Source: Octopus sinensis
Lineage: Eukaryota
Direction: 5' to 3'
NCBI RefSeq assembly: GCF_006345805.1
Contig: NC_043009.1
Location: 55,428,001-55,492,000 of the forward strand
Length of the DNA stretch: 64,000 bases
Shown here: positions 15,795 to 62,648 of the stretch, one piece after another
How positions within the stretch are numbered: the first letter of the stretch is position 1
How the letters are laid out: each line of letters begins with the position of its first letter
Position numbers and translations under genes: made by a program
Notes under the pieces: generated by a model
Told to the model about the DNA's origin: nothing
Databases searched by the model: none
Seen by the model: the letters and a program-made list of their open reading frames with translations, nothing else

Positions 15795-15938
15795 TCAAAT
15801 TGGTGCTTCTCTTGGTTCTATTAGAATTTCATTAACGGCAACATAGGCTGGTTGTGATGTAGCATAGATGCAAGCTTGTGCAACATCATCAGGCTCTAAT
15901 ATCTTCGTATTACTGCTACCATCATACAAATTCTTTGC
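15795..15938 (-). CDS. ATRR-like last coding exon: [47 protein letters not shown]
   Basis: ttacag acceptor, TGA at 15795-15797; LxPxDVA...QP..V.VNEILIxP end typical of YdfG-like SDRs. Confidence 0.95.
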   Translation of the reverse strand, partial: AKNLYDGSSNTKILEPDDVAQACIYATSQPAYVAVNEILIEPREAPI

Positions 15939-18659
15939 CTGTAAAAGGAAATAAAAATAAAAATACATCTCTAAGTAAATTTAGAATCAGCTAGTTAGGT
16001 ATAATAAGCTATGCTGTTAAAGTAAGTAATACCAAAGGAAGGAATAGAGATGTAAGAAGGTTGATAATATGAAGTATAATGTTTATGTAATAAGGATTTA
16101 TAAACTTTGAGGGACATAAAATAATTTGGTTCTATTGATGAAGTTAGAAATAATAATCAGACACTGATGGGCCAGAATCTCTAGTTTACTGGTATCCTGC
16201 ACAGAATAGTATTAAAAAAAATTGTATCATTTATACTAACATACAGGCACTTGTATTTCATTTAATTATGTAAGTAAATTTAACATTTGTTTCCTTTAGA
16301 GTGCGTTAACCAAGATGGCCACCCATAGCTTGAAGGATCAGTAATCTGGAAAAATTTTGGAACCAAAGATTCACAAAAGTCGTGGTTGTACCTGTATTTT
16401 ATTCATGTTTATTCCAGATCTGACAGGTAAAAGAATTAAATGCTAGATACCTCCTGATCTGTTGTATGATTTAATAGCTCTGTTTTCACATCACCAGGTT
16501 GAAGGCATGTTACTCGTATTCCCAAGGAAGCCACCTCTTGTCTTAGAGCTTGAGATAAACCTTCAACAAAGAATTTTGATCCAGAATATACTGCTAAACC
16601 AGCAAAACCCTGCAGAAATAGGGGAAAATATTAGGTATATATTTTTTTCATTAGACACACAATTTCAGATTTATGACAGAGAAAATGAGATTAGATGAGG
16701 ATGATGTCTTTCTGAAAAGTATTAGCAATGTGAGATGATATGCATGCAATTTAGAATTGAAAACAAGTCACTGCGGGGTGAATTGATTTGTTGTAGTCCT
16801 TTGGGGACAGATGATTTGTCCCAACTGATTAGGTGTTCAGCAAACTGGACATTCAGCCTGTTTTGGCAACTGCACTTTTTAGTGGTTGGAGGCAAACATA
16901 GTTGCGTACACGCATGCACACACACACACACAGACATATATTCAAGCCTCTTCTCCTTATCTCCTCAAAGACATACAGCATCTCGAAAGAGTCCAGAGGC
17001 TGGCTACCCGCATGGTTCATGGTCTCAAAAATTTGTCCTACGAAGAAAGGCTGAGGACGCTCGACCTTTATTCTCTTGAAAAACGCCGCCGCCGTGGTGA
17101 TCTCATTCTCGCCCACAACATCATAAGCGGGAAGTGTAACCTCTCAAAAGAGCTGTTTTTCACTCCTGCTCCGGAGCGTCGGCTGCGGGGTCATTCCGAA
17201 AAGCTCTACCTGCGACGATTTCATCTCAATCGAAGGAGAGGAGCTTTCTCCGTCTGGGTTGCGGATCCGTGGAACAAGCTGCCAGACGAGATGGTGAAGA
17301 TGCCGACGACCGCTTTGTTCAAAGCCTCCCTGGACCTCAAGTGGCCTGAACTCTTTACATGAACACCACCCTGTACTTAACTCCATGTCCCCCTACATGG
17401 CCTTGCTATGCATGCCTTTCCTTCCTTGGACACAAAGACCTGTTGAGGCAAGCGAAGTCGATATCGAACCTCATCCGACGACAAGCACCCATGCCAACCC
17501 CCTTTGCTTGCGAAGACATGTTGGGGCAAGTGAAATCGAAATCGAAATTGAACCAATCCTATGACTGGCACCCGGCAGATGCCAGGACACCTGGACTGGT
17601 GGTACGTAAAAAGCACTATCCGAATCGAGGCCGATGCCAGCGCCGCCTCGACTGGCTTCTGTGCCGGTGGCACGTAAATTGCACCAATCCGAAAGTGGCC
17701 GTTGCCAGCCTCACCTGGCACCTGTGCAGGTGGCATGTAAAAAGCATCCACTACACTCACGGAGTGGTTGGCGTTAGGAAGGGCATCCAGCTGTAGAAAC
17801 ATTGCCAGATAAGACTGGAGCCTGGTGCAGCCTTCTGGCTTCCCAGATCCCCGGTCGAACCGTCCAACCCATGCTAGCATGGAGAACGGACGTTAAACGA
17901 TGATGATGATATAAACAGAAAGAGAGAAAGAAACGGAAAGAATGAGACAAACATTAAAATGCCTGATGTCAAACAGGCCAGTGTTGAATCAGTGACATTA
18001 AACAAGTGGTGCCTAAAATGTCTCATCAATTTTTGACAAAGACAAATCTGCATAGTTTATAGGTGGTTTTAATCGATTAGACTGACTCAATGATTGGTAC
18101 TTATTTTATTGAGCTTGGAAGAATTAGAACTCAGGAAATAAAGGAATGTAACTAAATATCATGGGGCATGTTCAAACAATTCTAACATTCTACCATTCCA
18201 CTGACTTCTGTAGAATAACTGATTTTTCTTATATATATATATATATATATATATATGAATGGCTGTGTGGTAAGTAGCTTGCTAACCAACCACATGGTTC
18301 CGGGTTCAGTCCCACTGTGTGGCATCTTGGGCAAATGTCTTCTGCTATAGCCCTGGGCCGACCAATGCCTTGTGAGTGGATTTGGTAGACGGAAACTGAA
18401 AGAAGCCTGTCGTATATATGTATATATATATATATATATGTGTGTGTGTTTGTGTGTCTGTGTTTGTCCCCCTAGCATTGCCTGACAACCGATGCTGGTG
18501 TGTTTACGTCCCCGTCACTTAGCGGTTCGGCAAAAGAGACCGATAGAATAAGTACTGGGCTTACAAAGAATAAGTCCCGGGGTCGATTTGCTCGACTAAA
18601 GGTGGTGCTCCAGCATGGCCGCAGTCAAATGACTGAAACAAGTAAAAGAGTAAAAAGAG

Positions 18660-18738: not shown

Positions 18739-20172
18739 CAGATAGATATGTATATAAGACATCTGTGTTTGTCATACTCTCATACTTTAGCTTTTCAACA
18801 TCTGACATAAAGTCACCTTCCTCTCTTAAATGCTCTCACTTCCTCACTTCGTCATGGACTTCTTTTCCTTTTAAACTGTTCCTTCTCTGTCTTTGCAAGT
18901 TACTTGTCATCCTCATTAGTGCAACAGCATGAGTAAGGGCATCCATTCAGCCATAGAAATCATGCCAAAACTAACACTGGGGCTTGGCACAGTCCTCAGG
19001 ATCAATAGGTCCTGTCAAACCATTCAACCCACACCGGCATGGAAAAGACAGGGAACTTACAACGTGAAAAGGAAAAAGGTTTAATAACTCTTATATATTT
19101 CAAGTACAATGGCCCATCATCAGAAATAAAGAATGACAAAATGTTAGTCTACACAGTACTGGCCTGTACTCCCACCTAAAATATCAATATGTGAGTTTTT
19201 TTTTCAGGAGAGGAGGGAAATGAACTGCATCTACTTTCATTCAATAATGTTTGTTATGTTCATAAAATGAAGAACTTACCATCAGGTTTACTTTAACATG
19301 GTTTGCTGTAAACTTACATTGTAAATTATTCTACACAATTAATCTACACAGTGTAAATTAGTCCTAATACAATCACCTAATCATAGAGAAATGAAGTGAT
19401 GATATATAAAGCCAAAAAAAAAAAAAAAAAAGCTATATACTCTTCTTCCTGCATCAGAGGATATGTTGACAATATGACCAGACTTTTTCTTTATCATCCC
19501 ATCAAGGACAGCACCAATACAGTTAGTCACACCCTGAAGAAACAAAAATAAAAAGGTGTCCAATTTTCAAAAGTAATATATTTTCCAAAAATTGAATTGA
19601 ATTTATTGAAAAAGTAAATTATTTAAAAAAATAAAGATATTGGTGATTTGTTACTGATAATTTATTTATTATTCTTGCTTTAGCTAAAATCACTTAATAT
19701 TTTCTAATTTTAGATGTGTATTCAGGTATATCTGTATATCTATAAAAGGCAGGATGTGTGTGTGTGTGTGTGTTTGTGTGTGCATACATGAACGTAATTT
19801 ATGCACGTCCACAAATTAGTATGCATGGAACTCCAATTTTAGGAAGACATTCGTCACAACCCTAGTTGGGTTTTTGTCAACTTATTTTCCTCGAGGCACC
19901 CATGGATAGCAGTAAAAATCGATTTTCAAACATAACTTTTACCAATTTTGAAGTTTGCTAACATGAGTTCTTACCATAAGGAAGTGAAAGTGTGTGTGTG
20001 TAAGGGAGAGAGAGAGAAGTGTGTTGATGTACCTGTGTGTGTGTGTGTGTGAGGGAGAGAGATTTTGACAGTGTCTAACAAAACAAAAAATGTAAAGAGA
20101 AAGTGTGTGTGAGGAAGAGAGAGAGAGAGAGAGAGAGAATTTGACAGCATCTAACAAAAAATGTAGAGAAAG

Positions 20173-20317: not shown

Positions 20318-23300
20318 TAGTGACAGCATTCATCAAAAATAAAAATGTAAAATGTTTTTTTTCTTAAACACGAGATATAGTTTTCAAATTTAGGATGTTT
20401 TTGAAAGACACTATATTTTATAATCAGATAGCAGAATTGCCCGGCGTTGCTCGGGGCTGAATTGCTTGAAAGTACTGTTAATGATTGCACTGAATTATGA
20501 TGATTATTCAGGCAAATATTGAAATAAGCTTACGGTGGGAGATAAGGACTTAACGCCAAACGTGTGCCATTGCATTGTTTTGGGGGAACCAAATTTCTGA
20601 TGAGCATTATAGGGGCACTAACTTTAAGTTTGAGAAAGTGTGGTGGTAGTCCGGGGTGCTCAAAGGAATTGAGTACCTCTATTGGATAGTTGATGACGTC
20701 CTCTGGGTCAGGAGTTGTATCGATAGACTGATATACATCGACTTCCCCAGGAATGAGTTTTAGCATTTCATCATTAATATGGTGAACAGTTTTATTCCTC
20801 GGGGCCAGTATAGCCTTTTTGCCAATCCAATCCATATTCTGATAATTAGCTTGTAAATCTGGGAACACTGCATCTCTGAGATCAGAAGGCGTCTTAACAA
20901 TGGTACAAATGGAATCGATGGCAATATTACCATTTTCATCCCCTGGTATTTTGCCTTCGCCAAGTGCAAGGAGGGTGTGAGGAATGCTGGTGATGTGTGA
21001 TATTATGTCGCATATGAGCACACATATTGGTGTGAAGTTTGAGAGTTACTTCCGTTTATTTTTAAAAATATGCATTAAAATGGAAAAAAATGATGGTAAA
21101 TTATTTGTAAAATCATAGACTCATCGTAGACGCGCGCTAATACCAGAAGGGCTCGATATGAATCACGACTATAAGATACCCGGTTTTGGTTAAACTGCAT
21201 CACAAAATGTGGGAGTAGTTAGGAATCTAAATCGGAGTAGACAGACACACAACCTTTCTTTTATATATAAATACATACATACACACACACATACATACAC
21301 ACACACACACACACATACATGCATACATACATATACACATAAACCGAGTAAAAAATTTCAGTTATCTCTCTCTTTCACACATTACTCTCTCTGTCTCTTC
21401 ACACACACTAACAGAAGCACTTCACTTACCAACATACTGTCTGTCTCCCACACTCCATCAAACACACACACACACACACATGTACATCAATGAGTCCCAT
21501 GCACGGTAACTTCAAAGGAACTTCCCTCGTCATACAATCGCTTTCTCTTAGTCTCTTTCGCTCTCATTACTTATGTAAAAAAATAAAAGTTTTTTCTATG
21601 TGTGTAAAGAGGAAGTGGGAGGCAGAGTGAAAGAATCACTCACTACAGTAAGTGAATTACTTTCATTTTATTCCTTGCCCACTGTGTGTGTTGCATTTGC
21701 GTGTGGTGTAAACCAGACTAAGAAAAGCATTTGACACACACACCAGAATGTGAGTTTTCTGTAAATTTTGCTTAATTGGAGTTTAAATTTTAAAAACTGG
21801 ACCTGGCATGACGCGATGCATTGTACTCTTAAAAATGGTGGGTAAATTGTAATTGAAGAAATCCTATATTGTAGATTTGTATAACTCCCAAAGGGAGGCA
21901 GATAAAATCTGCCTTTTATAATAAGAGATTATATATACTTTCTCACACAACAATTGAAATATATTTATTTTAAATTACTTATTTATCTATTTATCTATAA
22001 AAGGCAGGATGTGTGTGTGTGTATGTGAATGTAATTTATGCACGTCCACAAATTAGCATGCATGTCACTCCAATTTTAGGACATTGGTCACGATCATGGC
22101 TGTGTTTTTGACAACTTATCTTCCCTGAGGCACCTGCAGATAGTGGTAAAAATCGATTATCAACCAATTTCCACATTAGTGAAAACCATAAGTTTGCTAA
22201 TATGAGTTAAGTCACCTGTCTAGCAATGGTGAGAAAGAAAAACAAAGGGTAAATTTTTAGATTAACACCTGCACGATTTTCACAAAGAAAAAAGAAAAAA
22301 CTCAGATTTTTTGCATGGAATCAAGTACTCTGACCTCCTAATATTCTGCAAATCCTTTATTTAGGAAAAGAGTGGGGTAGGGCGAGGGGGGCCCCAATCC
22401 CAGAATCATTGGAAATTTTTTTTTCTGTTGAATGAATTCCTGTGACCTCCTAATGTGCTACAAAACCCTTTTTGAGATCTAAAAATGGGGTGGGGTGAGG
22501 CTGCAAATCCCTTAGTTTCGTCTGGAGAAAAGGGGTGGGGTGAGGCCTCCCTCCAATCCCAGAATCATTGGGATTTTTTTTTCATTGAATGAATTCCTGT
22601 GACCGCCTAATATGCTTCAAAATCCTTTTTGGGGTCCGAAAAACGGGATGGAGTGAGGTGGAAGCCTCGGAAATTTTACCCACTCCCAACATTTTACAGA
22701 AATAAATTTTCCAGAGTGTAAATTACAGAGTCTGTATACAGTAGTGTATTGCATATATCTCTATATATGTGTATATATGTATCTATATACTGTAGCATAT
22801 ATGCATCAATATCAGGAGTATATTGTTATGTGACTTTTCAAAAGTGTGCATGGTGTGTATTGGCATACAGGTGTATGTAGTTGTATGTCAACGCGTGTAT
22901 AGAGTGTGTCTATATCACGTGATCACGTGACCGACCAGACCATCAGATGTTGCTACACATCGCTGGTCTCAATGCGTTCGCATTGTTTTAGCCTTCGAAT
23001 GACGCCACCCTGCTGGCTAAGCGAGCAGGCCAACAGAAGAAAGAGTGAGAGAAAGAGTGGTGAAAGGGTACAGCAGGGATCACCACCCCCTGCCGGAGCC
23101 ACGTGGAGCTTTTTGGTGTTTTCGCTCAATAAACACTCACAACGCCTGGTCTGGGAATCGAAACCATGATCCTATGACCGCGAGTCCGCTGCCCTAACAA
23201 CTGGGCCATTGCACCTCTATGTGTCTATATGTATGTATCATATATGACTCACCTTGCAATTAATATCTATCATACGCTCCCATTCTTCTTCTTTGAGATT

Positions 23301-23755
23301 TCTCATCAATGTGTAATACATAACGCCAGCACAGTTGACCAAAATATCAACTGGTCCAAGAGAACATTCCGTATGTTGAACAAGTTCTTTTACCTGCAAA
23401 AAAAGAAGTCAATATAAATAAAGACATAGATAAAATTTTTTTTATCATTATTATTGATTGTTGGTATTGTTATTGTAGCTTTGTTGTTTTCCTTATCTTG
23501 CTGCTTGGTGGAAATGATTTGAATGTAATATCCTTTGTGTTCGGTGTTGAAATTGTGATGACATTTGCTCGACAATTGATGAGAGAATTGAGCTTTTCTG
23601 CATCCATTCTGTATGTGTGTGTTTTCTCTTCTTTTGTTAATTTTATGTTCACTCCCACTGTATAGCACCTTAGGCAAGTGTCTTCTATTATTATCGTCTT
23701 GAACTGACCAATGCCTTGTGAATGAGTCTGGTAGAAGGAAACTATGTGGAAACCT

Positions 23756-24174: not shown

Positions 24175-26596
24175 ATATATATATGTGTTTGCGTGTGTGT
24201 GTGTGTGTATGTCTTTATGTCTGTGTCTGTCTCCATGCTACTTGAAAAACTGTTGGTTTATTTATGTCCCTTGATACATTCAAGAAACCAAGTAAAAAAA
24301 AAGAGTGACATCCATACCTGCTGTTTGTTCGTAACATCTGTTTTAACAGCAATGACATGGCCTTGAGCATCTTCTGAGAACTTCTTGCATAATTCCTGCA
24401 GCTTATCTTCCCTGCGAGCAGCCATAGCAACATTTGCACCTGCTTTAACAAAGGCTTCTGCAATTGCACAACCGATTCCACTTGATGCACCCGTTACAAT
24501 GACAACTTTGCCATGTATGTTGGTATCTGTAATATCAAATGAGGAAAACGCATATTTAACACAGCTTCCCCATTGTCATTGCAGAAATGGTGGAAGTGGG
24601 ATCAATTGCTTGACCACCACAGTATCCATTCTGCCCTAAAGTCCAACCCCTCCTCAAAGCCGTAGGGTGGTGTAAACGGGCAGTGCCAGAGCTATGCCGT
24701 CGAGAACTTCGGTTCCGGGTAGGGCCACCCAAGGCGGATTGGTCAGGCACCTAGCAGTATTAGGGCCACAGCCTGGCCAACGGGGCTCTGGTGAAAATTC
24801 CAAGAGGAGGCATCTGATAGGCAACCGGCGGCTTCGAGGTCGTTCTGTCCCTGCGTCTGTGGAGACTCCGTGGCAAACAGGGCGTCCTGTCACTCAGGAT
24901 ATGCATGCGGGATGTTGGGGACCACTTGTAAATTCAATATTCCCACGAAACTTCTTCTATGAATCTTACTATTTGCCGTCAGGACCAGAGAAGAAGCTGG
25001 CTCAACCCACTCTGGGTGAACGCCGTCACAAGTACAAGTAAGTACAGTATCCATTAGTGGGTTGTTGACCAGATTTATTTCAAAGGGTCAGAGTAATTCA
25101 TGCCGCTGAGTGAGCAGGAGTAATGTGAAATGAAGTGTTTTGCCCAAGAACACAATGCACTACCCAGTCTGGGAATTGAAACCATGAGCTTGCAATTGTG
25201 ACTGCAACACCCTAACCGCTAGACTATGATCCTTCACTGTGAGAGTTAGCAACATTTCTGACTAAAGAAATACCATAACCTGAGACTAATGATGATGATT
25301 TTTTTCAATAAGGGATAAAGCTACATCTTTGAAGGTGAGGCTTTTATTCATTAAACTTAAATACACACACACACACACACACACATCAGAGGCATGGCCA
25401 GGTTCTAAAGTTAAGGAGAGTAAGCACATAAAAAAATGGCACCATGACACATACCAAACAATTTTTATCTCATTTCTTGTATATTATGTAAAATATTTCA
25501 TTATTTATTATGTGTGTGCAATTTGTATTCTGCATTCATTAATTTCATGTTTCACTAACAATGTCATTACGTATGAAACTTACAACTACTGTGACATAAA
25601 AAAGATGAAACTCCACAGTCATTCAGTGTCAAGAGGTTATGACGTAGGCTTTGTCTTGGTTCATCAGATGTGAATGACCTCCAACAGATAACAGGTGATT
25701 GAACAGACAGTTTAAAAATACAGAAGGTCAGTCGAATAAAGTTCTTCCAAGGTTGTGTGATTAACAAAAAGATAAGAGGTTTGATGTTTATCACACAAAT
25801 GAACTAAAAAAGTTAAAGAAAATTGTTGAAAAGGGGCCAATTTGAAAAAATGTGCTCAGTGGTGAGCGGCTTCTCCCCTTGATCCCTTCTCTACAAAGCT
25901 CATTTCTATCACTTACTTTATGAAACAGAAGGCAAAGTTAATCCAAGTAGGATTTCGACTCAAGAAAAGAAATACTGTTGTTGCCACTCATGATAACAAT
26001 GATGAATATCTGTAGTCAAATAGATACAAAAAAAAAATTTAAAAAAGATATTGGTGAACTTACTGACGGCACTCATTCTTGATAATCTCTGGAATACTCC
26101 TTGGCGACAAAGTTTGTCAAAGTATAGTTTCAAAAGAGCCGAATCTATATCAGGATATGTCAGGCCTAATTTCTCCAGAATTTCAAGCAGGTTGCAATTT
26201 CTGAATGTACTTAGAGTAGAAAAAAACTGAGCATTTCTGTGAAGGAGGAGAAACAATAAAGAGATTATGTATAATTAACAATGTATTTTAATTTAAATAT
26301 AAGCAATAATGACAAACCAACAAAACAATGATAACATCAGACATTATAAGAGCCAATTTGCAACAGATTCACTGACAGAACTCACACCATTCTTCCAAGG
26401 AAGGCAACTTATCAATTACAGATTACATACTCTCTCACAAGAGATCCTTTGATGACAATTTTAACTTGTTTTAATTAAGGTATCTTTGGCCTAATGAGTA
26501 GCTGGTGGATTATCCCTTGTTTGGATACTTACCACTTCCGAGTTTCTGCTAGCTATGAAACATATGTAGCCTGGATTTTATCTACTCTATTCCCTA

Positions 26597-38614: not shown

Positions 38615-38648
<34 letters not shown>

Positions 38649-47706: not shown

Positions 47707-48454
47707 TACATACATGTATATACATATACATGCATGAATGTGTACATACATGTGTGTGTGTGTGTGTGTACCTTTCTATCTGTGTTTGTCCCTCCCCACT
47801 ACTTGATAACCAGTGTTGGTTAGTTTACATTTCTGTAATTTGGAGTTTTAGCAAAAGAGATTGATAGAACAAGTACCAGACTTATAAAAAATATAGGCAT
47901 TGGGTTTGAATTGATCGACAAAACCCTTCAAGATGATGCCCCAGCATGCCCACAACCCAATGACTGAAACAGGTAAAAGATAAAAGATAGATTAAAAGCA
48001 GATAATTCTAAGGAAAATAGATGGAATTATTTTTACAACTAATACCTTTGTGTTTAAAAGAAGCTCCTGAATCAAAAATGCTCCCAAGAATCCTGTTGCT
48101 CCAGTGACAAAAATTCTTCCTTTATGCCACCTATTGCCAACATGGAAAGATCTCCAGAATGCTCTCAGGCTCATGTCAATACTGTTATTATATAAGAAAT
48201 ATAAGAATGGGATTATTTTCACAGGAAGTATACATTGGAAAGGTAACAAATTCATTTGATATCTTGAGAGATGTTGGTTCACATCCCATAGACAGCCTTC
48301 AATGTTTTCTAGCCAAAGGGATTTTTAACTCAATATTTACATGTTATTAGTTATAGTTTTATGTGCGTCAAGATCCAACATTCCAAGAAAGAATTATTGC
48401 ATGTTTTCTCAAAAGTTTATAAATTCTTATGAATACAAAAATATGTATTTACAT

Positions 48455-52379: not shown

Positions 52380-52382
52380 TAT

Positions 52383-52876: not shown

Positions 52877-53495
52877 CTGTGTTTGTTCCCCCAACATCGC
52901 TTGACAACCGATGCTGGTGTGTTTACGTCTCCATAACTTAGCAGTTTGGCAAAAGAGACCAATAGAATAAGTACTAGGCTTACAAAGAATAAGTCCTGGG
53001 GTCGATTTGCTCGACTAAAGGTGGTGCTCCAGCATGGCCACAGTTAAATGACTGAAACAAGTAAAAGAGTAAAAGAGATATATTCTTACCCTCCTAAATC
53101 AAAGAAGCTCTCTTCAATGTCAATAGTACTTAGTTGTAAAACTGTCATCCAAATTTTGGCAAGTTTTTTCTCTGTATCTGTTATTGGGACACCACTTAAA
53201 TCAATGGTATCCAACAACTGGCTGTTGTATTCTGGTAGAGCTTTCTTATCCAGCTTGCCGGTTGCTGGGACAACTGGAATACTGAATTGAGTTAGAAAAG
53301 AAGTGGTTACAAAACAGTAAAGTTAAAATACACACATGTGCATGCACACACACACACACACACATTCACATACATACATACATACATACATACAAGCATA
53401 TATATAGATATTTGATAGATAGATATCGATAGATAAATATATACATATATACACACACATATATACACTGGCATACACATAAACACACACACACA

Positions 53496-56190: not shown

Positions 56191-59132
56191 TGGTGAGGGA
56201 TGGCAGAAATGGAGTATTGAACAAAACATTAAAATGCCTTGTGGTATTTGGTTTCATACAAGTTACATCCCCTTATGTCCGAGTCAACCTTGCCTTTCAC
56301 TCTTTACAAATCGTTGAGCTAAATATCAAGCAAAGTATAAGTGGTGCAGATATAAATGATAAGAATGCCTGAAGTAGAGGAATAAAAGAAAGGGACCAAA
56401 GAAACTACAGACCTTTCTAGAAACAAGATGTACGATGGTATCATGTAAAATGGTAATTTCTTCTTTAGCTGGTTTCTGACATCTTTACGTGTGACCTCAC
56501 CATTGGTGACCACGTAGGCAATGAGGAATTTGTCCTCTCCTTCATTTCCCTTTACCAATACCACACAGTTATTCACTGAACTCAGCGACATCAGAGACGC
56601 TTCCACAGCCTGGAAACAATCACAGAAGAAAGTTTATAGTTGTTGTCACCACCACCACCGCCACCACCACCACCAGCACCAGCAGCACCAGCACCACCAC
56701 CACCACCAGCACCAGCACCACCACCAGCACCGCCACCGCCACCACCACTGCCACCACCACCACCAGCACCACCAGCACTACCACCAGCACCAGCACCAGC
56801 ACCAGCACCACCGCCACCATTATCACCACCACCACCACCGCCACCACAACTGCCACCACCACCACCATCACTACTGCAACCACTATGGCCGCCGCTGCAA
56901 CCACCACCAAATAATATGTTTCTAAGCATGATGGTTTTGTTGTGTGTGGAAGACCAATAGAATAAAGATGCCTTAAGGGATCGTGACAAGATGGGCTGCC
57001 AGCTGTAGAATTATGATAGCATGGATAAAAGTGAACATAAAATTATTGGTGATGGGGATTTATATCTAAGTTACGTATCAATCAGTTTGATTTCTAACTG
57101 TCATTAGGGTTTCATATTCCTGGATGTATGAGTGGTACTTAAGAGTCCAATCTGGTAAAATATGTCCCCACTCCACTGTTAACAACCAGTATTGGTTTGT
57201 TTATATACCTGTAACTTAGTGGTTCAGCAAAAGAGACTGATAGAATAAGTACCTGACTTAAATAAAGATAAGTACAAGGGTTTGATTTGTTTGATTAATC
57301 ACTTTAAAGCAATGATCCAGCATGGCCTCAGTCATAAAACAAATAAAAGGCAGGAGATAAGAGATAAAAAAAATCCTTCATCTCTAAAATTGAGGATGTA
57401 GCAAGACTAATTTCATAAATTACATGTTTTAGACTTAAATAGTCTGAAAAGGGCTCCATGCATAAGTCTCTAATGATTGGACATGCCACCTGTCATTGGA
57501 AGCTGAAATACTTTGTTGGGCCAGGCATCTGGATTGGTCTAGTTTTATGTTGGATATGGAGTGCATATCCAATCATGTTGTGCAATAGACCACCAAGCAT
57601 AGCAAATTCTAAATGTTAACCAGCCCCAGCCCATTCAAAGTATCTTGGATTGCAGGATGGCCTGCTGTGCTAACCTTGGATCGTGGGGTGACCTGCTGTG
57701 CATGAGGAGACCTATTGAGTCAAGTACATCAACATCAAAATAAAAATCAAATGGAAATTGTAGTTGTGATACCCGTGCCAGTGGCACGTAAAAAGCACCA
57801 TCTGAACGTGCCAGCATCACCTTGGCTGGCTTCTGTGCCGGTGGCATGTAAAAAGCACCAACCAATCATGGATGTTGCCAGCCTCCTCGGACCCCTGTGC
57901 TGGTGGAACGTAAAAAGCACCCACTACACTCATGGAGTGGTTCGCGTTAGGAAGGGCATCTAGCTGTAGAAATACTGCCAGATCAGACTGGAGCCTGGTG
58001 TAGCCTCCTGGCTTCCCAGACCCCGGTTGAACAGTCCAACCCATGCTAGCATAGAAAATGGACATTAAACGATGATGATGATGCCTGAGCCATTTTTTGT
58101 TAATATGAAGTTTTTCATTTTAGCAGAAGGAAGAGTTTGTTTTCAGGAAGCTTTGTCACATTATTTTTGTTCTTGTTGAAGCACATTTAAACAAGTTCAC
58201 CTGAATTGAAAAGTCAATTATGAATGATTTTCTACAGCCCAGATTCTTCATGATGTATTAATCTGGTTTGCTGTATAATTTCATTTTGCTGAAGAATAAA
58301 ATGTTGCTGTTAATTGAAAGCTTATTTTTGGTATTATTTCCATTGTTTTATATGCAACTCATGGGAAGCAAGATTTTATATTAAGACGACCAGAGACATC
58401 ACCTTGCAGCTAAAAGGTTAATAGTTAAAAATAAATGATCTTATAAAGACAGGAATTATTTTTGAAGTCTTAAACGTTGGTTAACTTACCTGAACCTCTA
58501 CTGAATAACCTCTGATCTTCACCATGGAATCACACCGTCCACATATCTCCAGGTCACCATTGGACAGCATGTAACCCCAGTCACCAGTTCGATACAGTTG
58601 AGTGGGTTGGTTATTTGGGGACAGTTTGGTCTTTATGAATCTTTCAGCATTTAGCTTGGGCATTTTCAGATAACCGCAGGCGAGTGATGGACCACCAATA
58701 TAAATCTGTAGAAGTCAAAAAAAAAAAAAAGAAAAGGATGTATTTGATTTTAATTGTTGTTGTTATTGTTGTTATTATTATTTCCTTGAGCAAAGGTGAG
58801 CTTGCTGACACAGCCGTTAGCACACCGGACAAAATGCTTAGCAACATTTTTTCTGACCCTTTATGTTCTGGGTCTAAATTCTGCTGAGGTCAGCTTTGCC
58901 CTTCATCCTTTTGAGGTTGATGAATTAAGTAAGATGAATAGACATAGGAATGGCTGTGTGGTAAGTAGCTTGCTTACAAACTGCATGGTTCCGGGTTCAG
59001 CCCCACTGCATGACACCTTGGGCAAGTGTCTTCTATTATAGCCTCGGGCCAACCAAAGCCTTGTGAGTGGATTTGGTAGACAGAAACTGAAAGAAGCTCA
59101 TCGTATGTATATATATATATATATTATATATA

Positions 59133-59459: not shown

Positions 59460-59492
<33 letters not shown>

Positions 59493-60193: not shown

Positions 60194-62648
60194 GTGTGTG
60201 TGTATGATTTCTTACCTCACCAGACACTCCTACAGGTTGATGTTCCAGATTTTCATTCATGATCACTATATCTACATTAGGCAGGTGTTTACCGACTGGA
60301 GAAAACTTCCGACTTTCAAAAGCATCCTGTGAGTGAAGGAGAAGAATTTATAGTTAAGTAACAGATTTGAAACAATAGACTTAAAAAAGAATTTAATGAC
60401 AGGAGCAAGCAATAGCATAACACAACAGTGTAAAGACAAACTCAAGAGGGAGCCTTTATGTGGTTGCTTGGTTTGCTAGACATGGCAGTAAAGTCTCCCT
60501 CAAATTATACCATATCATCTAAAATATCCTGCATGCTAATGATTCTGCAAGTATGCCACCTAAATGTGCCCTTTTAAAGCCTAGCCAGGCTCATGGGCCT
60601 GGTTTCCTGGTTTCTATGGTGTATGTGTTCCCCAGCTGGACGGGACGCCAGTCCATTGCAGCATTACTCATTTTTGCCAGCTGAGTGAACTGGAGCAACG
60701 TGAAATGAAGTGTTTTGCTGAAGAATACAACGCGTCGACCGGTCCAGGAATCGAAACCACAATCTTACGATCATGGTGCTGACACCCTAACCACTAAGCC
60801 ACGCGCCTCCACTACCATATCATCTAAGTAAAGGCATATTGGATAATGCAGTCTTTGATGCGCTATGTCTGGGGCTATAGTAGAAGATAGTAAACCAAGG
60901 GGGGATTGAAATAAGAGTAAAAAGGGCTGTTAGAGCAGCTACTCTTTCCTTTGCCTCTGTCTCTGACCCTCTGTCTGTCACTCTGTCAGCTTGCCTTTCT
61001 GTCTGTTTGTCTGTCTATATAATTCTTTTCCCTGTTTATATATTTTCATTTTAACATTTTTTTTATAAACATTTATAAATGGCATGAAAAGAAAAAAACT
61101 AGCCACCACGAGGCAGACAGGCATGCATATACATACACACACATACATATATATGTGAGTATGTGTGTATGTATATATGTATATACATACGTGTGTGTAT
61201 GGGAAGGTATGCATGCGTGTATATGTATTTATGTGTATATGTATTTGTGTGCATATGTATGGATATATACATATATATACATACATATTTACACTAACGT
61301 ACACATGTATGTACATACATATACAAACACACGTGCATACATACACACATACATACACATACATTTACACAGGTATTCTACAAATATCTTCCTCTTTTCA
61401 GCCTAAATCTTGTTCATAATTACAGGTTAGTAAAATTAATAATTAAAAAAATTAAATAATGCTGACAAGAAAACAGTCACACACAAACACACAAACACAC
61501 ATATGCAGATACATGAAAACATATAGGCACAAACATATACACACACACAAACTTACACATAAACTTATAAACATTTAAACAAAAGAAACACACAAACACA
61601 CACATACACACTCATGCAAACATATACACACATACATATACATGTACAATACTGGATTAAATACTTAACAACAAAAAAAAACACTACCACCATCACAACC
61701 ACCACCAACAACAACAGCAGCAGCAACAAGAACAAGAACAAGAACAACAAGAACAAGAACAAGAACAACAACAACAGCAACAATAACAACACATCACCAC
61801 CACTGCTGTCACCACTACCACTACTGCCGTCACCACCACCATCACTAACACCACCAACAGTAGCATCAACAACAACTACAAGCTTACGAGGGAGTCCCTA
61901 TGTGGTCACTTGGCCTGTTAGAAACAGCAGCCAGCCAAATATCCCTCAAGTCATACCGTTCCTTCATAAACATAGAAAGGACACATTATATAATGCATTC
62001 TGTCCTATATACCCTTATACCTATTTCTTTACTACCCACAAGGGGCTAAACACAGAGGGGACAAACAAGGACAGACAAACGGATTAAATCTATTATATCG
62101 ACCCCAGTGCCTAACTGGTACTTAATTTATCGACCCCGAAAGGATGAAAGGCAAAGTTGACCTCGGCAGAATTTGAACTCAGAACGTAGTGGCAGACGAA
62201 ATACCGCTAAGCATTTCGCCCGACGTGCTAACGATTCTGCCAGCTCTCCGCCCTATACCCTTATAACGATGAGATGGACACGGATGAAAATATTCTTGAC
62301 CATAACCAGCATGGTCAGTGATGACTTAGGGACTAAATGGTAGCTCACTTTTAAATTGCGATGAGGTAAAATAAATGATGGTAATGGTGATGAAGATGAT
62401 GATGATAGTGGTGGTGGTGGTGGTGATGGTGCTGGTGGTGGCGGTGATGTATATTAACTTTTTTTTTGTTAAAAGAAGCCAAAACGCACTTTACCTTGTC
62501 ATGTGTATAGCACTGCGTTAGATCCACACACGCAACATCGTGGCATTCAGATATGCTGTAGAGGTTGACAAACTGGATGTGAGGTAAAGATGCAATACAC
62601 CTTTTGAAAAATGGTGTGGTAACAACTTCCCCACAGAATATAATGATT
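15795..62648 (-). CDS. Multi-exon NRPS-like A-T-R-R enzyme (ATRR / glycine-betaine reductase-like), 5'-truncated by the window edge; 20 exons
   Basis: Manual splicing of 20 exons gives a continuous frame (3046 nt), and all introns are GT..AG with matching phases. Motifs in order: FCGE, NLYSISE (A5), [15 protein letters not shown] (A6), YRTGD (A7), [15 protein letters not shown] (A8), GKLDKKALP (A10), FFDLGGHSLL (PCP Ser), VTGATGFLG / HAAALVN / GYSQSKW (thioester reductase), VTGASSGIG / VNCAG / NISSDAG / YSGSK (classical SDR), then TGA. Confidence 0.95.
16451..16609 (-). CDS. ATRR-like exon 19: [26 protein letters not shown]...[15 protein letters not shown]...DQE
   Basis: ctgcag acceptor, GAG|gtatct donor; YxxxK and PGxVxT motifs. 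Confidence 0.96.
16930..17375 (+). mobile_element. CR1-clade LINE, 3' ORF2 fragment
   Basis: [21 protein letters not shown]...[22 protein letters not shown]...RGHS.KL...F..WNKLP, the CR1 ORF2 C-terminus. Confidence 0.9.
17380..17910 (+). mobile_element. RTE-type LINE 3' UTR ending in (GAT)n
   Basis: Same sequence as the UTR following RTE ORF remnants at 27040-27618 and 50608-51200; internal gtggcacgtaaaaagcacc subrepeats. Confidence 0.8.
18258..18660 (+). mobile_element. Abundant SINE-like repeat with internal (TA)n(TG)n
   Basis: ggctgtgtggtaagtagcttgc...ccactg head and gctccagcatggccgcagtcaaatgactgaaacaagtaaaag tail; copies at about 36335-36750 (-), 43680-44055 (-), 52676-53075 (+) and 58945-59110 (+). 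Confidence 0.8.
19441..19533 (-). CDS. ATRR-like exon 18: [31 protein letters not shown]
   Basis: ttcag acceptor, AGA|gtatat donor; SDR catalytic Ser region. Confidence 0.95.
20428..21271 (-). mobile_element. Helitron carrying a PIF1-like helicase fragment
   Basis: ORF 20530-21021: AILAPRN..V..IN...NYPIEVLNS....[28 protein letters not shown]; Helitron-type hairpin 3' end near 20428-20460. Confidence 0.88.
22915..23218 (-). mobile_element. tRNA-derived SINE
   Basis: Copy of 10988-11258; ends about 35 bp from the donor of ATRR-like exon 17. Confidence 0.8.
23253..23393 (-). CDS. ATRR-like exon 17: VKELV...[18 protein letters not shown]...[11 protein letters not shown]
   Basis: ttttgcag acceptor, AAG|gtgagt donor; NNAG-like motif. 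Confidence 0.96.
23904..24130 (+). mobile_element. SINE with Meta-domain-like body
   Basis: aggcggcgagctggcag head plus gactttgcctttcatcctttc..ggtcgataaa..taccag body; copies at about 7950-8130, 32570-32735, 44200-44840 (three), 49900-50120 and 62025-62250. Confidence 0.7.
24318..24526 (-). CDS. ATRR-like exon 16: start of second reductase, classical SDR ([14 protein letters not shown]...MAARREDKL...TDVT)
   Basis: tacag acceptor, CAG|gtatgg donor; phase 1 matches exon 15; no in-exon start Met before the Rossmann motif. Confidence 0.95.
24575..25045 (+). mobile_element. RTE-derived short element (UTR-like region joined to an RTE 3' end with CAAGTA tail)
   Basis: 3' part caggaccagagaagaagctgg..caaccc..ctgggtgaa.gc.gtcacaagtacaagta is shared with the RTE remnant at 59870-60120 (-). 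Confidence 0.6.
26064..26236 (-). CDS. ATRR-like exon 15: end of R1 ([57 protein letters not shown])
   Basis: cacag acceptor, A|gtaagt donor; 173 nt; resembles the R-domain terminal helices (YP.ID..LL..YF). Confidence 0.88.
26665..27618 (+). mobile_element. RTE-clade LINE 3' fragment (ORF end plus 3' UTR)
   Basis: [23 protein letters not shown]...[12 protein letters not shown]...[15 protein letters not shown]; then UTR with subrepeats and (GAT)n. Confidence 0.88.
27890..28600 (+). mobile_element. R4/Dong-like non-LTR retrotransposon, C-terminal CCHC plus restriction-like endonuclease remnant
   Basis: [14 protein letters not shown]; C..C...[11 protein letters not shown]; [10 protein letters not shown]; TDRTI..N.P..IIKD; IDVSV; KLSKYKD.EIEI. 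Confidence 0.85.
30204..30275 (-). pseudogene. Degenerate tRNA-Asp(GTC)
   Basis: TTCTCGGTAGTATAGTGGTAAGTATCCCCACCTGTCACGCGGGAGACCGGGTTTCGATTCCCCGCCGGGGTG: 72 nt, GTC anticodon, with mismatches in the acceptor (1:72), anticodon and T stems. Confidence 0.8.
31521..31762. repeat. Perfect 242-bp palindrome, no spacer
   Basis: 121-bp arms centred on cagcaa|ttgctg (31641/31642). Confidence 0.95.
31875..32130 (+). mobile_element. Gypsy pol remnant (protease-RT linker)
   Basis: [11 protein letters not shown]...[23 protein letters not shown], resembling the pre-RT HhI.T.GPPv..RpRRLaPd motif. Confidence 0.65.
32954..33022 (-). CDS. ATRR-like exon 14 (least certain): [22 protein letters not shown]
   Basis: ctttgttttcag acceptor, AT|gtcagt donor; 69 nt, phase 2-2, bridges exons 13 and 15 in frame; no diagnostic motif. 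Confidence 0.65.
34008..34316 (+). mobile_element. Non-autonomous Helitron
   Basis: Inverse copy of 12186-12558; ends cgagcaacgccgggcgatactgCTAG|T. Confidence 0.8.
34405..34476 (-). CDS. ATRR-like exon 13: [23 protein letters not shown]
   Basis: ttccag acceptor, AG|gtaaat donor; 72 nt, phase 2-2; GY...PFxxW motif typical of the R-domain C-terminal part. Confidence 0.9.
35712..36290 (+). mobile_element. RTE 3' UTR with about six tandem 66-bp subrepeats
   Basis: Unit ggcatgtaaaaagcaccatccaaatgtggccgatgccaggtccacctgactggctcctgtgctggt (35712 to 35778); (GAT)n tail. Confidence 0.8.
37025..37250 (-). CDS. ATRR-like exon 12: (G)NLAGD...WNPQDF...[12 protein letters not shown]...[10 protein letters not shown]
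   Basis: ctgtag acceptor, AG|gtaaa donor; TPVDF motif; 226 nt. Confidence 0.94.
37570..37890 (-). mobile_element. Penelope-like element, GIY-YIG region remnant
   Basis: SCNC..PGSCPLD..CL.KSIIY.A...SECEFKD.YANH..SF.Y......[12 protein letters not shown]. Confidence 0.8.
38648..38814 (-). CDS. ATRR-like exon 11: (S)TDAVF...[13 protein letters not shown]...GLPVVIYRL
   Basis: ttccag acceptor, G|gtaata donor; catalytic YxxxK of R1. Confidence 0.96.
40234..40319 (-). CDS. ATRR-like exon 10: [28 protein letters not shown]
   Basis: ttttcag acceptor, AG|gtaag donor; NVxGT and HYIS motifs. Confidence 0.94.
40678..40908. mobile_element. piggyBac-type MITE
   Basis: TTAA CCCTTTCGTTAC left end, degenerate right end; inverted homolog of 49131-49351. 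Confidence 0.7.
41443..41721. mobile_element. Fold-back MITE
   Basis: About 130-bp imperfect inverted arms (tctggggagagt...ttgcaacc / ggttgcaa...actctccccaga) with a short central spacer. Confidence 0.75.
42457..42572 (-). CDS. ATRR-like exon 9: (G)[38 protein letters not shown]
   Basis: ttcag acceptor, AAT|gtaagt donor; GD..NLG and IIHxAAxVN motifs. Confidence 0.95.
44880..45250 (+). mobile_element. CR1-clade LINE 3' end
   Basis: Degenerate [22 protein letters not shown] then UTR and (TTA)n tail. Confidence 0.7.
45285..45450 (-). CDS. ATRR-like exon 8: [11 protein letters not shown]...[12 protein letters not shown]...SRVATVK
   Basis: tttag acceptor, G|gtaatt donor; YCLVR motif of R domains; 166 nt. 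Confidence 0.93.
48046..48181 (-). CDS. ATRR-like exon 7: start of thioester reductase ([20 protein letters not shown])
   Basis: aacag acceptor, AAG|gtatta donor; Rossmann TGxxGxxG motif. Confidence 0.96.
48957..49404. mobile_element. Nested piggyBac-type MITEs
   Basis: Outer TIR cc(t)tttagcatt / aatgccaaaggg-TTAA; inner 49131-49351 with TIR CCCTTTCGTTAC / GTAACGAAAGGG and TTAA duplication (49127-49130, 49352-49355). Confidence 0.8.
50359..50577 (-). CDS. ATRR-like exon 6: PCP (HSLLAATLL...KDLFLFPTV) and linker
   Basis: tgcag acceptor, AA|gtaaat donor; completes DLGG-HS; 219 nt. Confidence 0.95.
50608..52345 (-). mobile_element. RTE-clade LINE, RT through 3' UTR, 5'-truncated
   Basis: [33 protein letters not shown]; Cys-rich insert; [19 protein letters not shown]; UTR with (GAT)n. 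Confidence 0.92.
53090..53281 (-). CDS. ATRR-like exon 5: A10 lysine plus start of PCP ([16 protein letters not shown]...IWMTVL...ESFFDLG)
   Basis: ttcag acceptor, GG|gtaag donor; 192 nt, phase 2-2. Confidence 0.95.
53552..55468 (+). mobile_element. Helitron with N-terminal repeat remnant and nested SINE
   Basis: A|TC...hairpin ccgagcaatgccggg...CTAG|T; internal AAxASETAxE-like repeats (54390-54580); SINE at 55008-55325. Confidence 0.7.
55490..56185. repeat. Tandem duplication (about 341-bp period) of a Penelope-like terminal sequence plus microsatellite
   Basis: ataaactcaggacgcc at 55591 and 55932; the same family occurs on the opposite strand at 63870-64000. Confidence 0.8.
56413..56609 (-). 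CDS. ATRR-like exon 4: A small subdomain ([12 protein letters not shown]...LIAYVV...[14 protein letters not shown])
   Basis: ttccag acceptor, AG|gtctgt donor; 197 nt; LPxYMIP motif. Confidence 0.95.
56640..56915. repeat. Cryptic (CAC/CAG)n trinucleotide repeat, intronic
   Basis: Low-complexity caccac/cagcac run starting about 30 bp beyond the exon 4 acceptor. Confidence 0.9.
58490..58705 (-). CDS. ATRR-like exon 3: A6-A8 core ([13 protein letters not shown]...YRTGDWG...[17 protein letters not shown])
   Basis: Polypyrimidine tract plus tacag acceptor, CAG|gtaagt donor; 216 nt; adenylation core motifs. Confidence 0.97.
59870..60120 (-). mobile_element. RTE-like LINE extreme 3' end
   Basis: [34 protein letters not shown] then a CAAGTA tail. 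Confidence 0.65.
60216..60326 (-). CDS. ATRR-like exon 2: [37 protein letters not shown]
   Basis: cacag acceptor, GAG|gtaag donor; phase 0-0, 111 nt; typical pre-A6 segment (PVGK...PVGVSGE). Confidence 0.92.
62495..62648 (-). CDS. ATRR-like exon 1 (in window): A domain, [51 protein letters not shown]
   Basis: ttacag acceptor, AAG|gtaaag donor; CGE and A5-like motifs. Confidence 0.9.

Follow-up and report, generated by a model that had tools for sequence, protein, structure and literature searches.

The 64,000-nucleotide stretch of DNA analysed here (the window) carries the last 20 of the 25 coding exons that make up an intact gene of Octopus sinensis. The gene product joins an adenylation domain (A), a carrier domain (T) and two reductase domains (R1 and R2) on one polypeptide and belongs to the ATRR family of glycine betaine reductases, which in fungi regenerate choline from this osmolyte. 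The gene is best explained as the single-copy O. sinensis orthologue of this family, and the enzyme probably converts glycine betaine to choline. We consider this the best reading because of the end-to-end alignment with fungal ATRR, the signature of the substrate pocket, the catalytic motifs and the grouping with ATRR in a neighbor-joining (NJ) tree. The same candidate function had been put forward in an original prediction from the DNA letters, and it gains support from the collinearity, the pocket and the tree (200/200 bootstraps); substrate, product and physiological role are assigned by homology.

Structure of the gene

We aligned the RefSeq protein XP_029644001 (P0001; 1282 aa), the product of this gene, with the window by tblastn and fixed the exon ends by unique GT-AG pairs. 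Residues 268-1282 are encoded, at 100% identity in the exon segments, by 20 minus-strand exons running from 62648 to 15795, and at 19 of 19 junctions a single donor/acceptor pair, always GT..AG, reproduces the protein. The window holds 3046 nt of coding sequence, made up of 1 base, 1014 codons and the stop: the first exon starts at 62648, where the acceptor cag|A completes the codon of R268, and the stop TGA lies at 15797-15795. This match of the gene model to the letters is far beyond chance, and it reproduces exactly the 20 GT-AG exons, with ends at 15795 and 62648, of the original prediction, whose product of about 1014 aa corresponds to the 1014 codons. The attribution to a probable cephalopod was right as well, since the window is the exact reverse complement of O. 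sinensis chromosome CM016871.1 (GCA_006345805.1; 0 mismatches over 58,206 bp).

The whole gene has 25 coding exons over 72 kb, of which the window carries exons 6-25. The five upstream exons, outside the window, supply residues 1-267; the protein begins with MASQSEQ, and an in-frame stop is found two codons 5' of the ATG. Condensation domains on these exons had been named beforehand as evidence against a betaine reductase, but the exons contribute nothing beyond the N-terminal half of the A domain before the stop is reached.

In the window (exons numbered from its first, all on the minus strand), exon 1 (62495..62648; coding exon 6 of 25; residues 268-319) encodes an A5-like motif, NLYSISE, and the A-domain pocket positions 299-331, with I271 (62641-62639), C273, L297 and D305 (62539-62537). 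The A domain continues through exon 2 (60216..60326; residues 320-356) and exon 3 (58490..58705; residues 357-428), which holds motifs A6, A7 (YRTGD; Y394 at 58594-58592) and A8, into exon 4 (56413..56609; residues 429-494), with the AMP-binding_C subdomain and A9 (LPFYMIP). Exon 5 (53090..53281; residues ~494-558) encodes A10 (TGKLDK) and, as far as FFDLGG, the beginning of the carrier domain, and exon 6 (50359..50577; residues 559-631) the rest of the PP-binding region, where the carrier motif FFDLGGHS is completed with the phosphopantetheine Ser560 (50573-50571), followed by a linker. The thioester reductase R1 starts in exon 7 (48046..48181) with the NADPH motif TGATGFLG (48105-48082) and extends through exons 8 (45285..45450), 9 (42457..42572) and 10 (40234..40319) to exon 11 (38648..38814), which carries the catalytic pair Y828-x3-K832 (38729-38715), and exon 12 (37025..37250). 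Its C-terminal subdomain is encoded by exons 13 (34405..34476) and 14 (32954..33022), the latter followed by the longest intron (6.7 kb), and exon 15 (26064..26236) contains the end of R1 and the R1-R2 linker. R2, a classical SDR, starts in exon 16 (24318..24526) with TGASSGIG (residues 1046-1053; G1047 at 24491-24489) and proceeds through exon 17 (23253..23393), with an NCAG motif (N1124, 23336-23334), exon 18 (19441..19533), with the catalytic Ser1177 (19458-19456), and exon 19 (16451..16609), with the catalytic Y1190-x3-K1194 (16588-16574), to the last coding exon 20 (15795..15938), which encodes a C-terminal motif and the stop. A degenerate additional copy of exon 15 lies downstream of the gene.

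Domain order and catalytic residues

Pfam models matched on the full XP_029644001 are AMP-binding (14-369), AMP-binding_C (430-496), PP-binding (533-596), NAD_binding_4 (656-904) and adh_short (1041-1235), which gives the order A-T-R1-R2, with a YdfG-like SDR as R2, that defines ATRR; the four families proposed for this search in advance were all recovered. No condensation domain (PF00668) was found by Pfam in the full protein, nor do the upstream exons encode one. The protein passes the thioester reductase model TIGR01746 with 284 bits for a cut-off of 213. The motifs A5-A8 and A10, the GGHS serine of the carrier, TGATGFLG, YxxxK and the terminal SDR, all read earlier from the letters, are present in the spliced translation.

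The catalytic residues of both reductases have counterparts in the Aspergillus nidulans enzyme. In R1, Y828 is equivalent to Y811, the tyrosine changed in the Y811F mutant of the A. nidulans ATRR; in R2, G1047 is equivalent to G1036 and Y1190 to Y1178. The carrier serine, the R1 tyrosine, the glycine motif for NADPH in R2 and the R2 tyrosine are thus all in place.

Relationship to fungal ATRR

The reference for the fungal enzyme was A. nidulans AN5318.2 (P0412, "Glycine betaine reductase ATRR"), in whose sequence F201, W204, W270, E304, G1036 and Y1178 were confirmed. It was reached from the fungal loci of a metagenome scan, by a cluster look-up starting from ORF L079, a Penicillium ATRR. The octopus protein aligns end to end with P0335, from the cluster of AN5318 at 90% or more, with 36% identity and 766 bits. 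By domain, its identity to AN5318 is 38% for A, 32% for T, 32% for R1 and 54% for R2, and overall identity to fungal ATRR is ~36-38%.

An NJ tree, a distance method only, was built from 981 A-T-R1 columns with 200 bootstraps; its outgroups, all drawn from a single metagenome scan, were eight canonical NRPS A-T-R proteins, and Lys2, CAR and Ebony lay outside its sampling. Fungal ATRR, the animal and protist homologues and two A-T-R proteins bearing the ATRR-type pocket (L008 and L013) are split from the eight canonical NRPS proteins in 200/200 replicates. Within this group, the fungi on one side and the animals and protists on the other form two sub-clades, each with 100% support, and the molluscs cluster at 100%. 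An early NJ tree in which fungal and animal ATRR were not monophyletic proved to be an artefact of placing L008 and L013 among the outgroups; once both were counted as ingroup, the canonical NRPSs split off with 100% support. The phylogeny proposed in the original prediction is hereby obtained as regards fungal ATRR; clustering of the A domain away from ATRR had been named as evidence against the assignment, and grouping with ATRR was found instead.

The homologue search with the protist protein P0114 returned protists and animals only and no fungal homologues, which places the fungi as the more distant sub-clade. When the 1015-aa window product was searched against a representative library, the best 150 matches consisted almost entirely of very large multimodular NRPSs, which score highly because the contributions of their many A-T modules add up; only three ATRR-type proteins were among them, none of them fungal. 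Judged by sequence, the closest characterised relative of the octopus gene is fungal ATRR, and this placement is well supported.

The substrate pocket of the A domain

Pocket positions are numbered as in GrsA, using a sequence that we take to be that of GrsA and that reproduced DAWTIAAICK at the ten published positions. The resulting code is V-F-W-L-W-N-C-E-I-K in A. nidulans ATRR, V-F-W-L-I-C-L-D-V-K in Octopus, V/I-F-W-L-W-C-L-D-V-K in most animals and V-F-W-L-H-C-L-D-V-K in the plant-parasitic nematodes Bursaphelenchus and Globodera. The loop that bears Asp235 in GrsA (SISFDASVWEM) reads CNVFF---IWEM in Octopus, residues 196-205 being encoded by an exon outside the window on the same chromosome, and the 3-residue gap is the same in A. 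nidulans ATRR and in the animal ATRR-type proteins. Replacement of Asp235 by a shorter hydrophobic loop is a described feature of the ATRR A domain (PMC7496086).

Two of the three aromatic cage residues of the fungal enzyme are retained: F200 and W203 of Octopus, likewise encoded outside the window and taken from the same chromosome, align with F201 and W204 of A. nidulans. The third, W270 (position 299), is replaced by I271. Its role in the cage was proposed from a homology model (Hai et al, 2019, bioRxiv 10.1101/559534). Position 299 is Ile in O. sinensis, O. bimaculoides and O. vulgaris and Leu in Argonauta, so that octopods have lost a Trp that is kept by Haliotis, Mytilus, Aplysia, two other cephalopod transcript sequences and most animals. 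Across 116 family members the position is variable (W, I, V, L, H, T or M), and it is His or Ile in the nematode group that has been studied.

The acidic residue E304 (position 330) is matched by D305, at a spacing of 34 residues from position 299 in both Octopus and A. nidulans; this conservative change from Glu to Asp is invariant in animals and protists. Positions 301, 322 and 331 are consistently N, C and I in fungi and C, L and V in animals and protists. Counted over the whole ten-residue code, three to five positions depart from the fungal state (N to C, C to L, E to D and I to V in addition to position 299), while the others (F, W, the acidic residue as a class, the short loop) are near-invariant from fungi to animals.

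Proposed function

In the mechanism that we propose by analogy with the fungal enzyme, the A domain would bind a small acid with a quaternary ammonium group, most likely glycine betaine, in a hydrophobic and aromatic pocket devoid of the amino-binding Asp235 loop, with D305 near the cationic head group. The acid would be adenylated with ATP and then loaded onto Ser560, whose phosphopantetheine arm would hold it as a thioester. R1 would use NADPH, through TGATGFLG and Y828/K832, to release betaine aldehyde, which R2, through TGASSGIG, S1177 and Y1190/K1194, would reduce to choline. Betaine, an osmolyte, may in this way be recovered as choline and made available for phosphatidylcholine or acetylcholine. 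Data from other members of the animal/protist clade are in line with this scheme: labelled betaine ends in choline-derived glycerophosphocholine where protist atrr homologues are expressed, and the nematode MiATRR confers betaine tolerance in yeast (PMC11050029).

Animals and protists nevertheless form a clade of their own at ~36-38% identity to fungi, which makes a drift in substrate possible. The same chemistry might accordingly serve another small onium acid, preferred in Octopus or in the whole animal/protist clade, such as dimethylglycine, a sulfobetaine or a DMSP-type sulfonium, beta-alanine or proline betaine, or arsenobetaine, the product being the corresponding alcohol instead of choline. 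We give this reading a minor but appreciable share of the probability. The separation of the clade speaks for it, as do the Ile or Leu of octopods at a position that is variable throughout the family and the consistent differences between fungi and animals plus protists at positions 301, 322 and 331; moreover, BurA-A, which has the same short loop and acidic residue, loads DMSP and not betaine (PMC7496086). Against it, the remaining pocket positions are near-invariant from fungi to animals, and a nematode enzyme in which position 299 is His or Ile still made betaine less toxic to yeast. R2 is also the most fungus-like domain and has a dN/dS of 0.02 between two Octopus species, and the R2 of fungal ATRR needs a cationic aldehyde, within an enzyme of strict size selectivity.

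A narrower version concerns the octopods. The change from Trp to Ile or Leu at position 299 could widen or shift the specificity, for instance to the reduction of arsenobetaine to arsenocholine, and the animal/protist clade may not be strictly betaine-specific; we hold this to be rather improbable. If it were so, the octopod enzyme might reduce a bulkier onium acid, a sulfonium or another betaine abundant in cephalopod tissue. That glycine betaine is reduced to choline remains the reading that we favor for the octopus enzyme.

Other classes of enzyme share the A-T-R core. A peptide NRPS module, a generic carboxylic acid reductase or an alpha-aminoadipate reductase of the Lys2 type could be suggested by the database names attached to these proteins ("linear gramicidin synthase subunit D", "Fatty acid synthase", "L-2-aminoadipate reductase"), by sequence matches in the PDB, the best of which are LgrA modules, and by partial matches to the Lys2 and CAR models of NCBIfam. 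We rejected these assignments, which are very improbable. The Lys2 model TIGR03443 gives 396.6 bits against a cut-off of 1030.1 and the CAR model NF041592 180.8 bits against a cut-off of 1300; the additional fused SDR is absent from both classes. As for a peptide NRPS, the condensation domain is missing, the tree separates canonical NRPSs at 100% bootstrap and the loss of the Asp235 loop indicates that the A domain does not bind an alpha-amino acid. The RefSeq name "linear gramicidin synthase subunit D" for XP_029644001 is wrong and should be corrected, likewise "Fatty acid synthase".

Maintenance of the gene

The gene is under purifying selection. Compared with its O. bimaculoides orthologue, in which exon lengths are identical, dN/dS is 0.175 overall, and the O. 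vulgaris orthologue shows five amino-acid differences only. In cephalopod relatives, contigs of 3.9-6.2 kb carry full-length products, a size that admits only spliced mRNA. Absence of a spliced transcript had been named beforehand as evidence against the assignment, and these contigs speak indirectly against such an absence. The reading of the locus as non-functional (microbial contamination, an artefact of assembly or a pseudogene) has negligible probability; nothing can be adduced for it other than the degenerate exon 15 copy, and it is refuted by the reading frame, intact over 25 exons with GT-AG introns, the setting among octopus repeats on a 72-Mb chromosome scaffold, the orthologues, the transcript contigs and the dN/dS ratio. 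The earlier argument that the introns speak against contamination is borne out by these exons and this scaffold.

Significance

If the proposed function is correct, octopuses and most invertebrate phyla can regenerate choline from the abundant osmolyte glycine betaine, spending one ATP and two NADPH; vertebrates and holometabolous insects apparently lack the gene. In vertebrate-centred biochemistry, the choline-to-betaine step is treated as irreversible. The reverse route would matter for osmolyte turnover and, in a mollusc with a large brain, for the choline that goes into phosphatidylcholine and acetylcholine.

The literature already contains the idea of a betaine-to-choline enzyme, for fungi, nematodes and marine protists, and in a passing mention also for molluscs. 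The occurrence of atrr in invertebrates was reported by Hai et al (2019, bioRxiv 10.1101/559534), nematode ATRR was studied in 2024 (PMC11050029), and the orthologues from Haliotis and Nematostella are already listed in RefSeq as "glycine betaine reductase ATRR(-like)". The novelty claimed in the original prediction was in this respect overstated, the family being known in invertebrates, molluscs included (Hai et al, 2019; PMC11050029; PMC11869996; RefSeq). The value of the present analysis lies in a verified cephalopod gene model and in a lineage-specific change of the pocket, from W to I or L in octopods.

Comparison with known systems

BurA-A from Burkholderia (PMC7496086) resembles the octopus A domain in its short hydrophobic loop in place of Asp235 and its acidic residue for the onium head, but it belongs to a bacterial PKS/NRPS assembly line, acts on a sulfonium substrate and has no R1-R2 tail. 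Lys2 and the CARs share the A-T-R core and the two-electron reduction to an aldehyde that depends on ATP, NADPH and phosphopantetheine; they differ in having no R2 and another A-domain pocket, and the octopus protein misses their NCBIfam equivalog cut-offs widely. The mollusc FmtATR of the bursatellin pathway (PMC11869996) is, like the octopus protein, an animal monomodular NRPS-like reductase whose gene has introns and which takes an acid to an alcohol. However, its order is Fmt-A-T-R, its A domain activates tyrosine, its gene lies in a cluster, and a single R domain performs the four-electron reduction with no fused SDR.

Fungal ATRR (A. nidulans AN5318.2), whose biochemistry was established by Hai, Huang & Tang (2019, bioRxiv 10.1101/559534 / PNAS 116:10348), is collinear with the octopus protein from end to end as A-T-R1-R2 (1270 vs 1282 aa). 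The two have in common the F201/W204 pair, a match to the acidic E304, the short Asp235 loop, the carrier Ser, both NADPH motifs, both Tyr/Lys pairs and the C-terminal motif, which is conserved down to the fungal enzyme; the octopus protein stands apart by its animal/protist sub-clade, by Ile in place of W270 and by its 25 coding exons over 72 kb. MiATRR of Meloidogyne incognita (Zhang et al, 2024, PMC11050029), known from a context of plant parasitism with yeast betaine tolerance and RNAi as indirect functional evidence, falls in the same clade with the same architecture, at ~40-44% identity to the octopus protein; the plant-parasitic nematodes Bursaphelenchus and Globodera have the octopus pocket except for position 299, where Trp is likewise absent. 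The bursatellin paper (PMC11869996) mentioned molluscan "glycine-betaine reductase homologues" in 2025. Among molluscs, the Haliotis rufescens "glycine betaine reductase ATRR-like" protein (P0007) is a direct orthologue with the same domains and ~58% identity over its full length, and it carries, as do those of Mytilus and Aplysia, the Trp that is Ile in Octopus and Leu in Argonauta.

Structure of the gene

A rough concatenate of the visible minus-strand reading-frame blocks matched P0001, an O. sinensis protein of 1282 aa named 'linear gramicidin synthase subunit D' in RefSeq (XP_029644001) and 'Fatty acid synthase' in UniRef. Aligned to the window by tblastn, P0001 gave 20 segments covering residues 268-1282, 100% identical within exons. 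Every donor/acceptor combination around the boundaries of the segments was tried, and those whose spliced translation equals P0001 were kept; each of the 19 junctions had a single solution, every one GT..AG, with polypyrimidine-rich acceptors. Within the window the coding sequence runs from 62648 (cag|A, the last base of codon R268), where the first exon starts, to a TGA stop at 15797-15795, the in-window exons totalling 3046 nt, i.e. 1 base, 1014 codons and the stop. The original prediction had placed 20 phase-compatible GT-AG exons encoding about 1014 aa between 15795 and 62648; P0001-guided splicing recovers the same coordinates, the motifs it named are all found in the spliced translation, and its observation of the gene is confirmed in every detail.

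The reverse complement of the window matches the O. sinensis chromosome locus (L001; GCA_006345805.1, CM016871.1) with 0 mismatches over 58,206 shared bp. The gene spans 72.4 kb and has 25 coding exons, five of them (residues 1-267) upstream of the window, and the 10 kb flanking it on each side contain no other gene call. An in-frame stop lies two codons 5' of the ATG, and the start is at the equivalent position in mollusc, coral, protist and A. nidulans orthologues. The lack of a condensation domain, noted for the window, extends to the whole enzyme: none is found in the five upstream coding exons, bounded by the in-frame stop, nor by Pfam in the full-length protein.

Domain composition and likeness to the fungal enzyme

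In the full protein, Pfam identifies AMP-binding (14-369), AMP-binding_C (430-496), PP-binding (533-596), NAD_binding_4 (656-904) and adh_short (1041-1235), and the score for the NCBIfam thioester-reductase model TIGR01746 exceeds its cut-off. Among solved structures, the best matches by sequence are NRPS modules (LgrA) for A-T, the reductase MxaA for R1 and, for R2, SDRs resembling clavaldehyde dehydrogenase. The NCBIfam equivalogs for Lys2 (397 bits vs a cut-off of 1030) and for carboxylic acid reductase (181 vs 1300) are both missed widely, and these two identities were rejected. Names in the databases are misleading for this A-T-R1-R2 protein: RefSeq calls the Octopus orthologues P0001, P0425 and P0426 'linear gramicidin synthase subunit D(-like)', UniRef calls them 'Fatty acid synthase', and a protist member goes by 'L-2-aminoadipate reductase'. 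The name 'glycine betaine reductase ATRR(-like)' is already carried in RefSeq by members from Haliotis rufescens and Nematostella vectensis.

Fungal ATRR was absent from the best 120 matches of either of two homologue searches, and was reached through a metagenome scan with the family alignment, which gave three fungal-type loci; the ORF of one (L079) is 94% identical to a Penicillium protein. A cluster look-up from P0335 (Aspergillus section Nidulantes), at least 90% identical to AN5318, led to P0412 (UniRef A0A1U8QWA2), the A. nidulans protein AN5318.2, which bears the name 'Glycine betaine reductase ATRR' and was characterised by Hai et al. (2019). Six published residue numbers (F201, W204, W270, E304, G1036 and Y1178) match P0412 exactly; the catalytic tyrosine of R1 was published as Y811 (mutant Y811F) but stands at 812 in P0412 (G811, Y812). 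The alignment of the octopus protein with P0335 is end to end (36% identity, 766 bits), and its identity to AN5318 is 38% in A, 32% in T, 32% in R1 and 54% in R2. Fungal ATRR and the octopus protein share the C-terminal ...NEILIEPR(E/D)(A/E)PI.

Distribution and phylogeny

Among the best 120 matches of each search, full-length A-T-R-R homologues (36-76% identical) are present in cephalopods, gastropods, bivalves, annelids, nemerteans, a brachiopod, flatworms and an acoel, in cnidarians, echinoderms, hemichordates, tunicates, hemimetabolous insects (many of them), clade III/IV nematodes and Trichoplax, and in stramenopiles, ichthyosporeans and a cryptophyte. Neither vertebrates nor holometabolous insects appear among these matches, while tunicates, hemichordates, echinoderms and many hemimetabolous insects do, which suggests lineage-specific losses. 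The ichthyosporean sequences are far nearer to the stramenopile ones (57-58%) than to the animal ones.

From Kimura distances over 981 alignment columns with <20% gaps, which amount to A-T-R1, we computed a neighbour-joining tree for sequences of fungi (6), animals (20) and protists (4) together with 10 A-T-R ORFs that the metagenome scan had yielded. The method is crude, and the tree leaves out Lys2, CAR and Ebony, the first two being covered by the NCBIfam cut-offs. Fungi formed a clade at 100% bootstrap, as did animals plus protists; animals on their own had 82%, and molluscs and cephalopods 100% each. An apparent failure of all A-T-R-R sequences to group arose with the metagenome loci L008 and L013 as outgroups; both carry the ATRR pocket signature (CN[IV]FFVWE..., N[TL]YSISEC...) without R2. 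The ATRR set including these two split from eight canonical NRPS A-T-R sequences (NxYGPTE) in 200/200 bootstraps, which places the octopus A-T-R1 region within the ATRR lineage, where it belongs to a sub-clade distinct from fungi.

All six metagenome contigs L008-L013 encode A-T-R proteins of ~1050-1500 aa that end after R1, with no fused SDR and with an ATRR-type A-domain signature (CN[IV]FFVWE, N[TL]YSISEC[HG][DE]V). The G+C content of L010 (73%) suggests a bacterial origin. The betaine-type A domain was stated in 2019 to be exclusive to eukaryotes (Hai et al., 2019); if any of these contigs is bacterial, it is not, and such A-T-R enzymes may stop at betaine aldehyde.

The specificity pocket

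Pocket positions were numbered on a GrsA-PheA sequence, which reproduces DAWTIAAICK when read at the ten positions from the literature. A. nidulans W204, W270 and E304 share columns with GrsA 239, 299 and 330 in a MAFFT alignment. The code is V-F-W-L-W-N-C-E-I/V-K in A. nidulans and five other fungi, V/I-F-W-L-W-C-L-D-V-K in most animals, V-F-W-L-H-C-L-D-V-K in plant-parasitic nematodes and V-F-W-L-I-C-L-D-V-K in O. sinensis and O. bimaculoides. The nematode code agrees with the published statement that five of the ten positions equal those of the fungal enzyme, with one varying between His and Ile (PMC11050029). In all these codes, the loop at the Asp235 site is three residues shorter than in GrsA, a shortening singled out for ATRR-A and the sulfonium-acid-loading BurA-A (PMC7496086). 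The octopus A domain thus possesses an ATRR-type pocket, apart from one notable exception, the third 'cage' tryptophan, which is isoleucine (I271, window 62641-62639). Isoleucine is also present in O. bimaculoides and O. vulgaris and leucine in Argonauta, and tryptophan is kept in two other cephalopod transcript sequences (64% and 74% identical). Among 116 full-length members, this position is W in about half and otherwise I, V, L, H, T, M or C, the remaining pocket positions being nearly invariant.

Evidence for a functional gene

Full coding sequences rebuilt for O. sinensis (L001) and O. bimaculoides (L082) have 25 exons each, of identical lengths, and differ at 121/3846 nt and 46/1282 aa. 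Over the whole coding sequence the dN/dS ratio (Nei-Gojobori) is 0.175; by domain it is 0.20 for A, 0.21 for R1 and 0.02 for R2. The O. vulgaris protein differs from that of O. sinensis at 5 residues. Full-length products of related cephalopods lie on contigs of 3.9-6.2 kb from assembled sequencing runs, which, for a gene of such structure, can only be spliced transcripts.

Duplication and repeats around the gene

The sequence at window 587-9373, downstream of the gene, partially duplicates 25905-32558 (most of intron 14 plus exon 15) in collinear but diverged form. A degenerate copy of exon 15 with flanking intron (587-1082, minus strand) is 78% identical to 25905-26422 and keeps its splice sites, its frame being broken by deletions of 13, 10 and 1 bp; upstream of it, 7115-7746 and 9247-9373 are collinear copies of two stretches of intron 14, 29433-30123 and 32439-32558. 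All these blocks belong to one partial segmental duplication, ~6.6 kb of the gene in extent, which is located ~6-15 kb downstream of the stop codon and is broken by a retrotransposon. The LTR-type remnants of the latter (1951-4330, + strand) are several successive ORFs whose Pfam matches, weak to moderate, are to retroviral aspartyl protease, RNase H-like RVT_3/DUF7047 and an integrase zinc-binding domain.

Intron 17 contains a Pif1 helicase 2B ORF fragment (20533-21045, - strand, E 4.5e-12), probably a Helitron-type transposon remnant, and intron 5 an RVT_1 reverse transcriptase fragment in the orientation of the gene (51372-52487, - strand, E 2e-15), probably a LINE remnant, to which LINE-tail-like ORFs at 16886-17362 and 26730-27137 (both + strand) are similar. 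ARAGORN and Rfam (37 bits, gathering score 29) both pick out a tRNA-Asp(GTC)-like sequence in intron 14 (30202-30276, - strand), which represents either a genuine tRNA gene or the tRNA-derived head of a SINE. A ~200-bp interspersed repeat, presumably an octopus SINE, has copies of 83-96% identity, lying in either orientation, in many of the introns and in the region downstream of the gene (e.g. 6097-6292, 17724-17910, 27425-27620, 31079-31288, 36100-36309, 46406-46600, 50601-50796, 57897-58083 and 59437-59671), and its translation accounts for ORF fragments recurring with the same 12-residue string. Microsatellites are abundant in introns.

Proposed function and relation to known systems

By homology with the fungal enzyme, the A domain would adenylate glycine betaine and load it on Ser560, R1 would reduce the thioester to betaine aldehyde, and R2 would reduce the aldehyde to choline. 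We consider it probable that the octopus enzyme converts betaine to choline, both substrate and product being read across from fungal ATRR. With Ile in place of W270 and three further differences in the pocket, the specificity could have shifted, and action on another onium acid is conceivable, if rather unlikely. Betaine to choline remains our preferred reading.

Hai et al. (2019) had already recorded atrr in invertebrates, animal ATRR was the subject of a 2024 nematode paper (PMC11050029), glycine-betaine reductase homologues of molluscs have been mentioned (PMC11869996), and the gene is annotated, under wrong names, in three Octopus genomes; it is thus a member of an already known family, to which the octopod pocket substitution is the only addition. 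The first mollusc NRPS characterised, FmtATR, is not of the ATRR family (PMC11869996). Two studies support the proposed function outside the fungi: yeast carrying nematode MiATRR can grow on inhibitory betaine, and parasitism suffers when the gene is knocked down (PMC11050029); and label from betaine reached glycerophosphocholine derived from choline in Pacific plankton where dinoflagellates, stramenopiles, haptophytes and amoebozoans transcribed atrr homologues.
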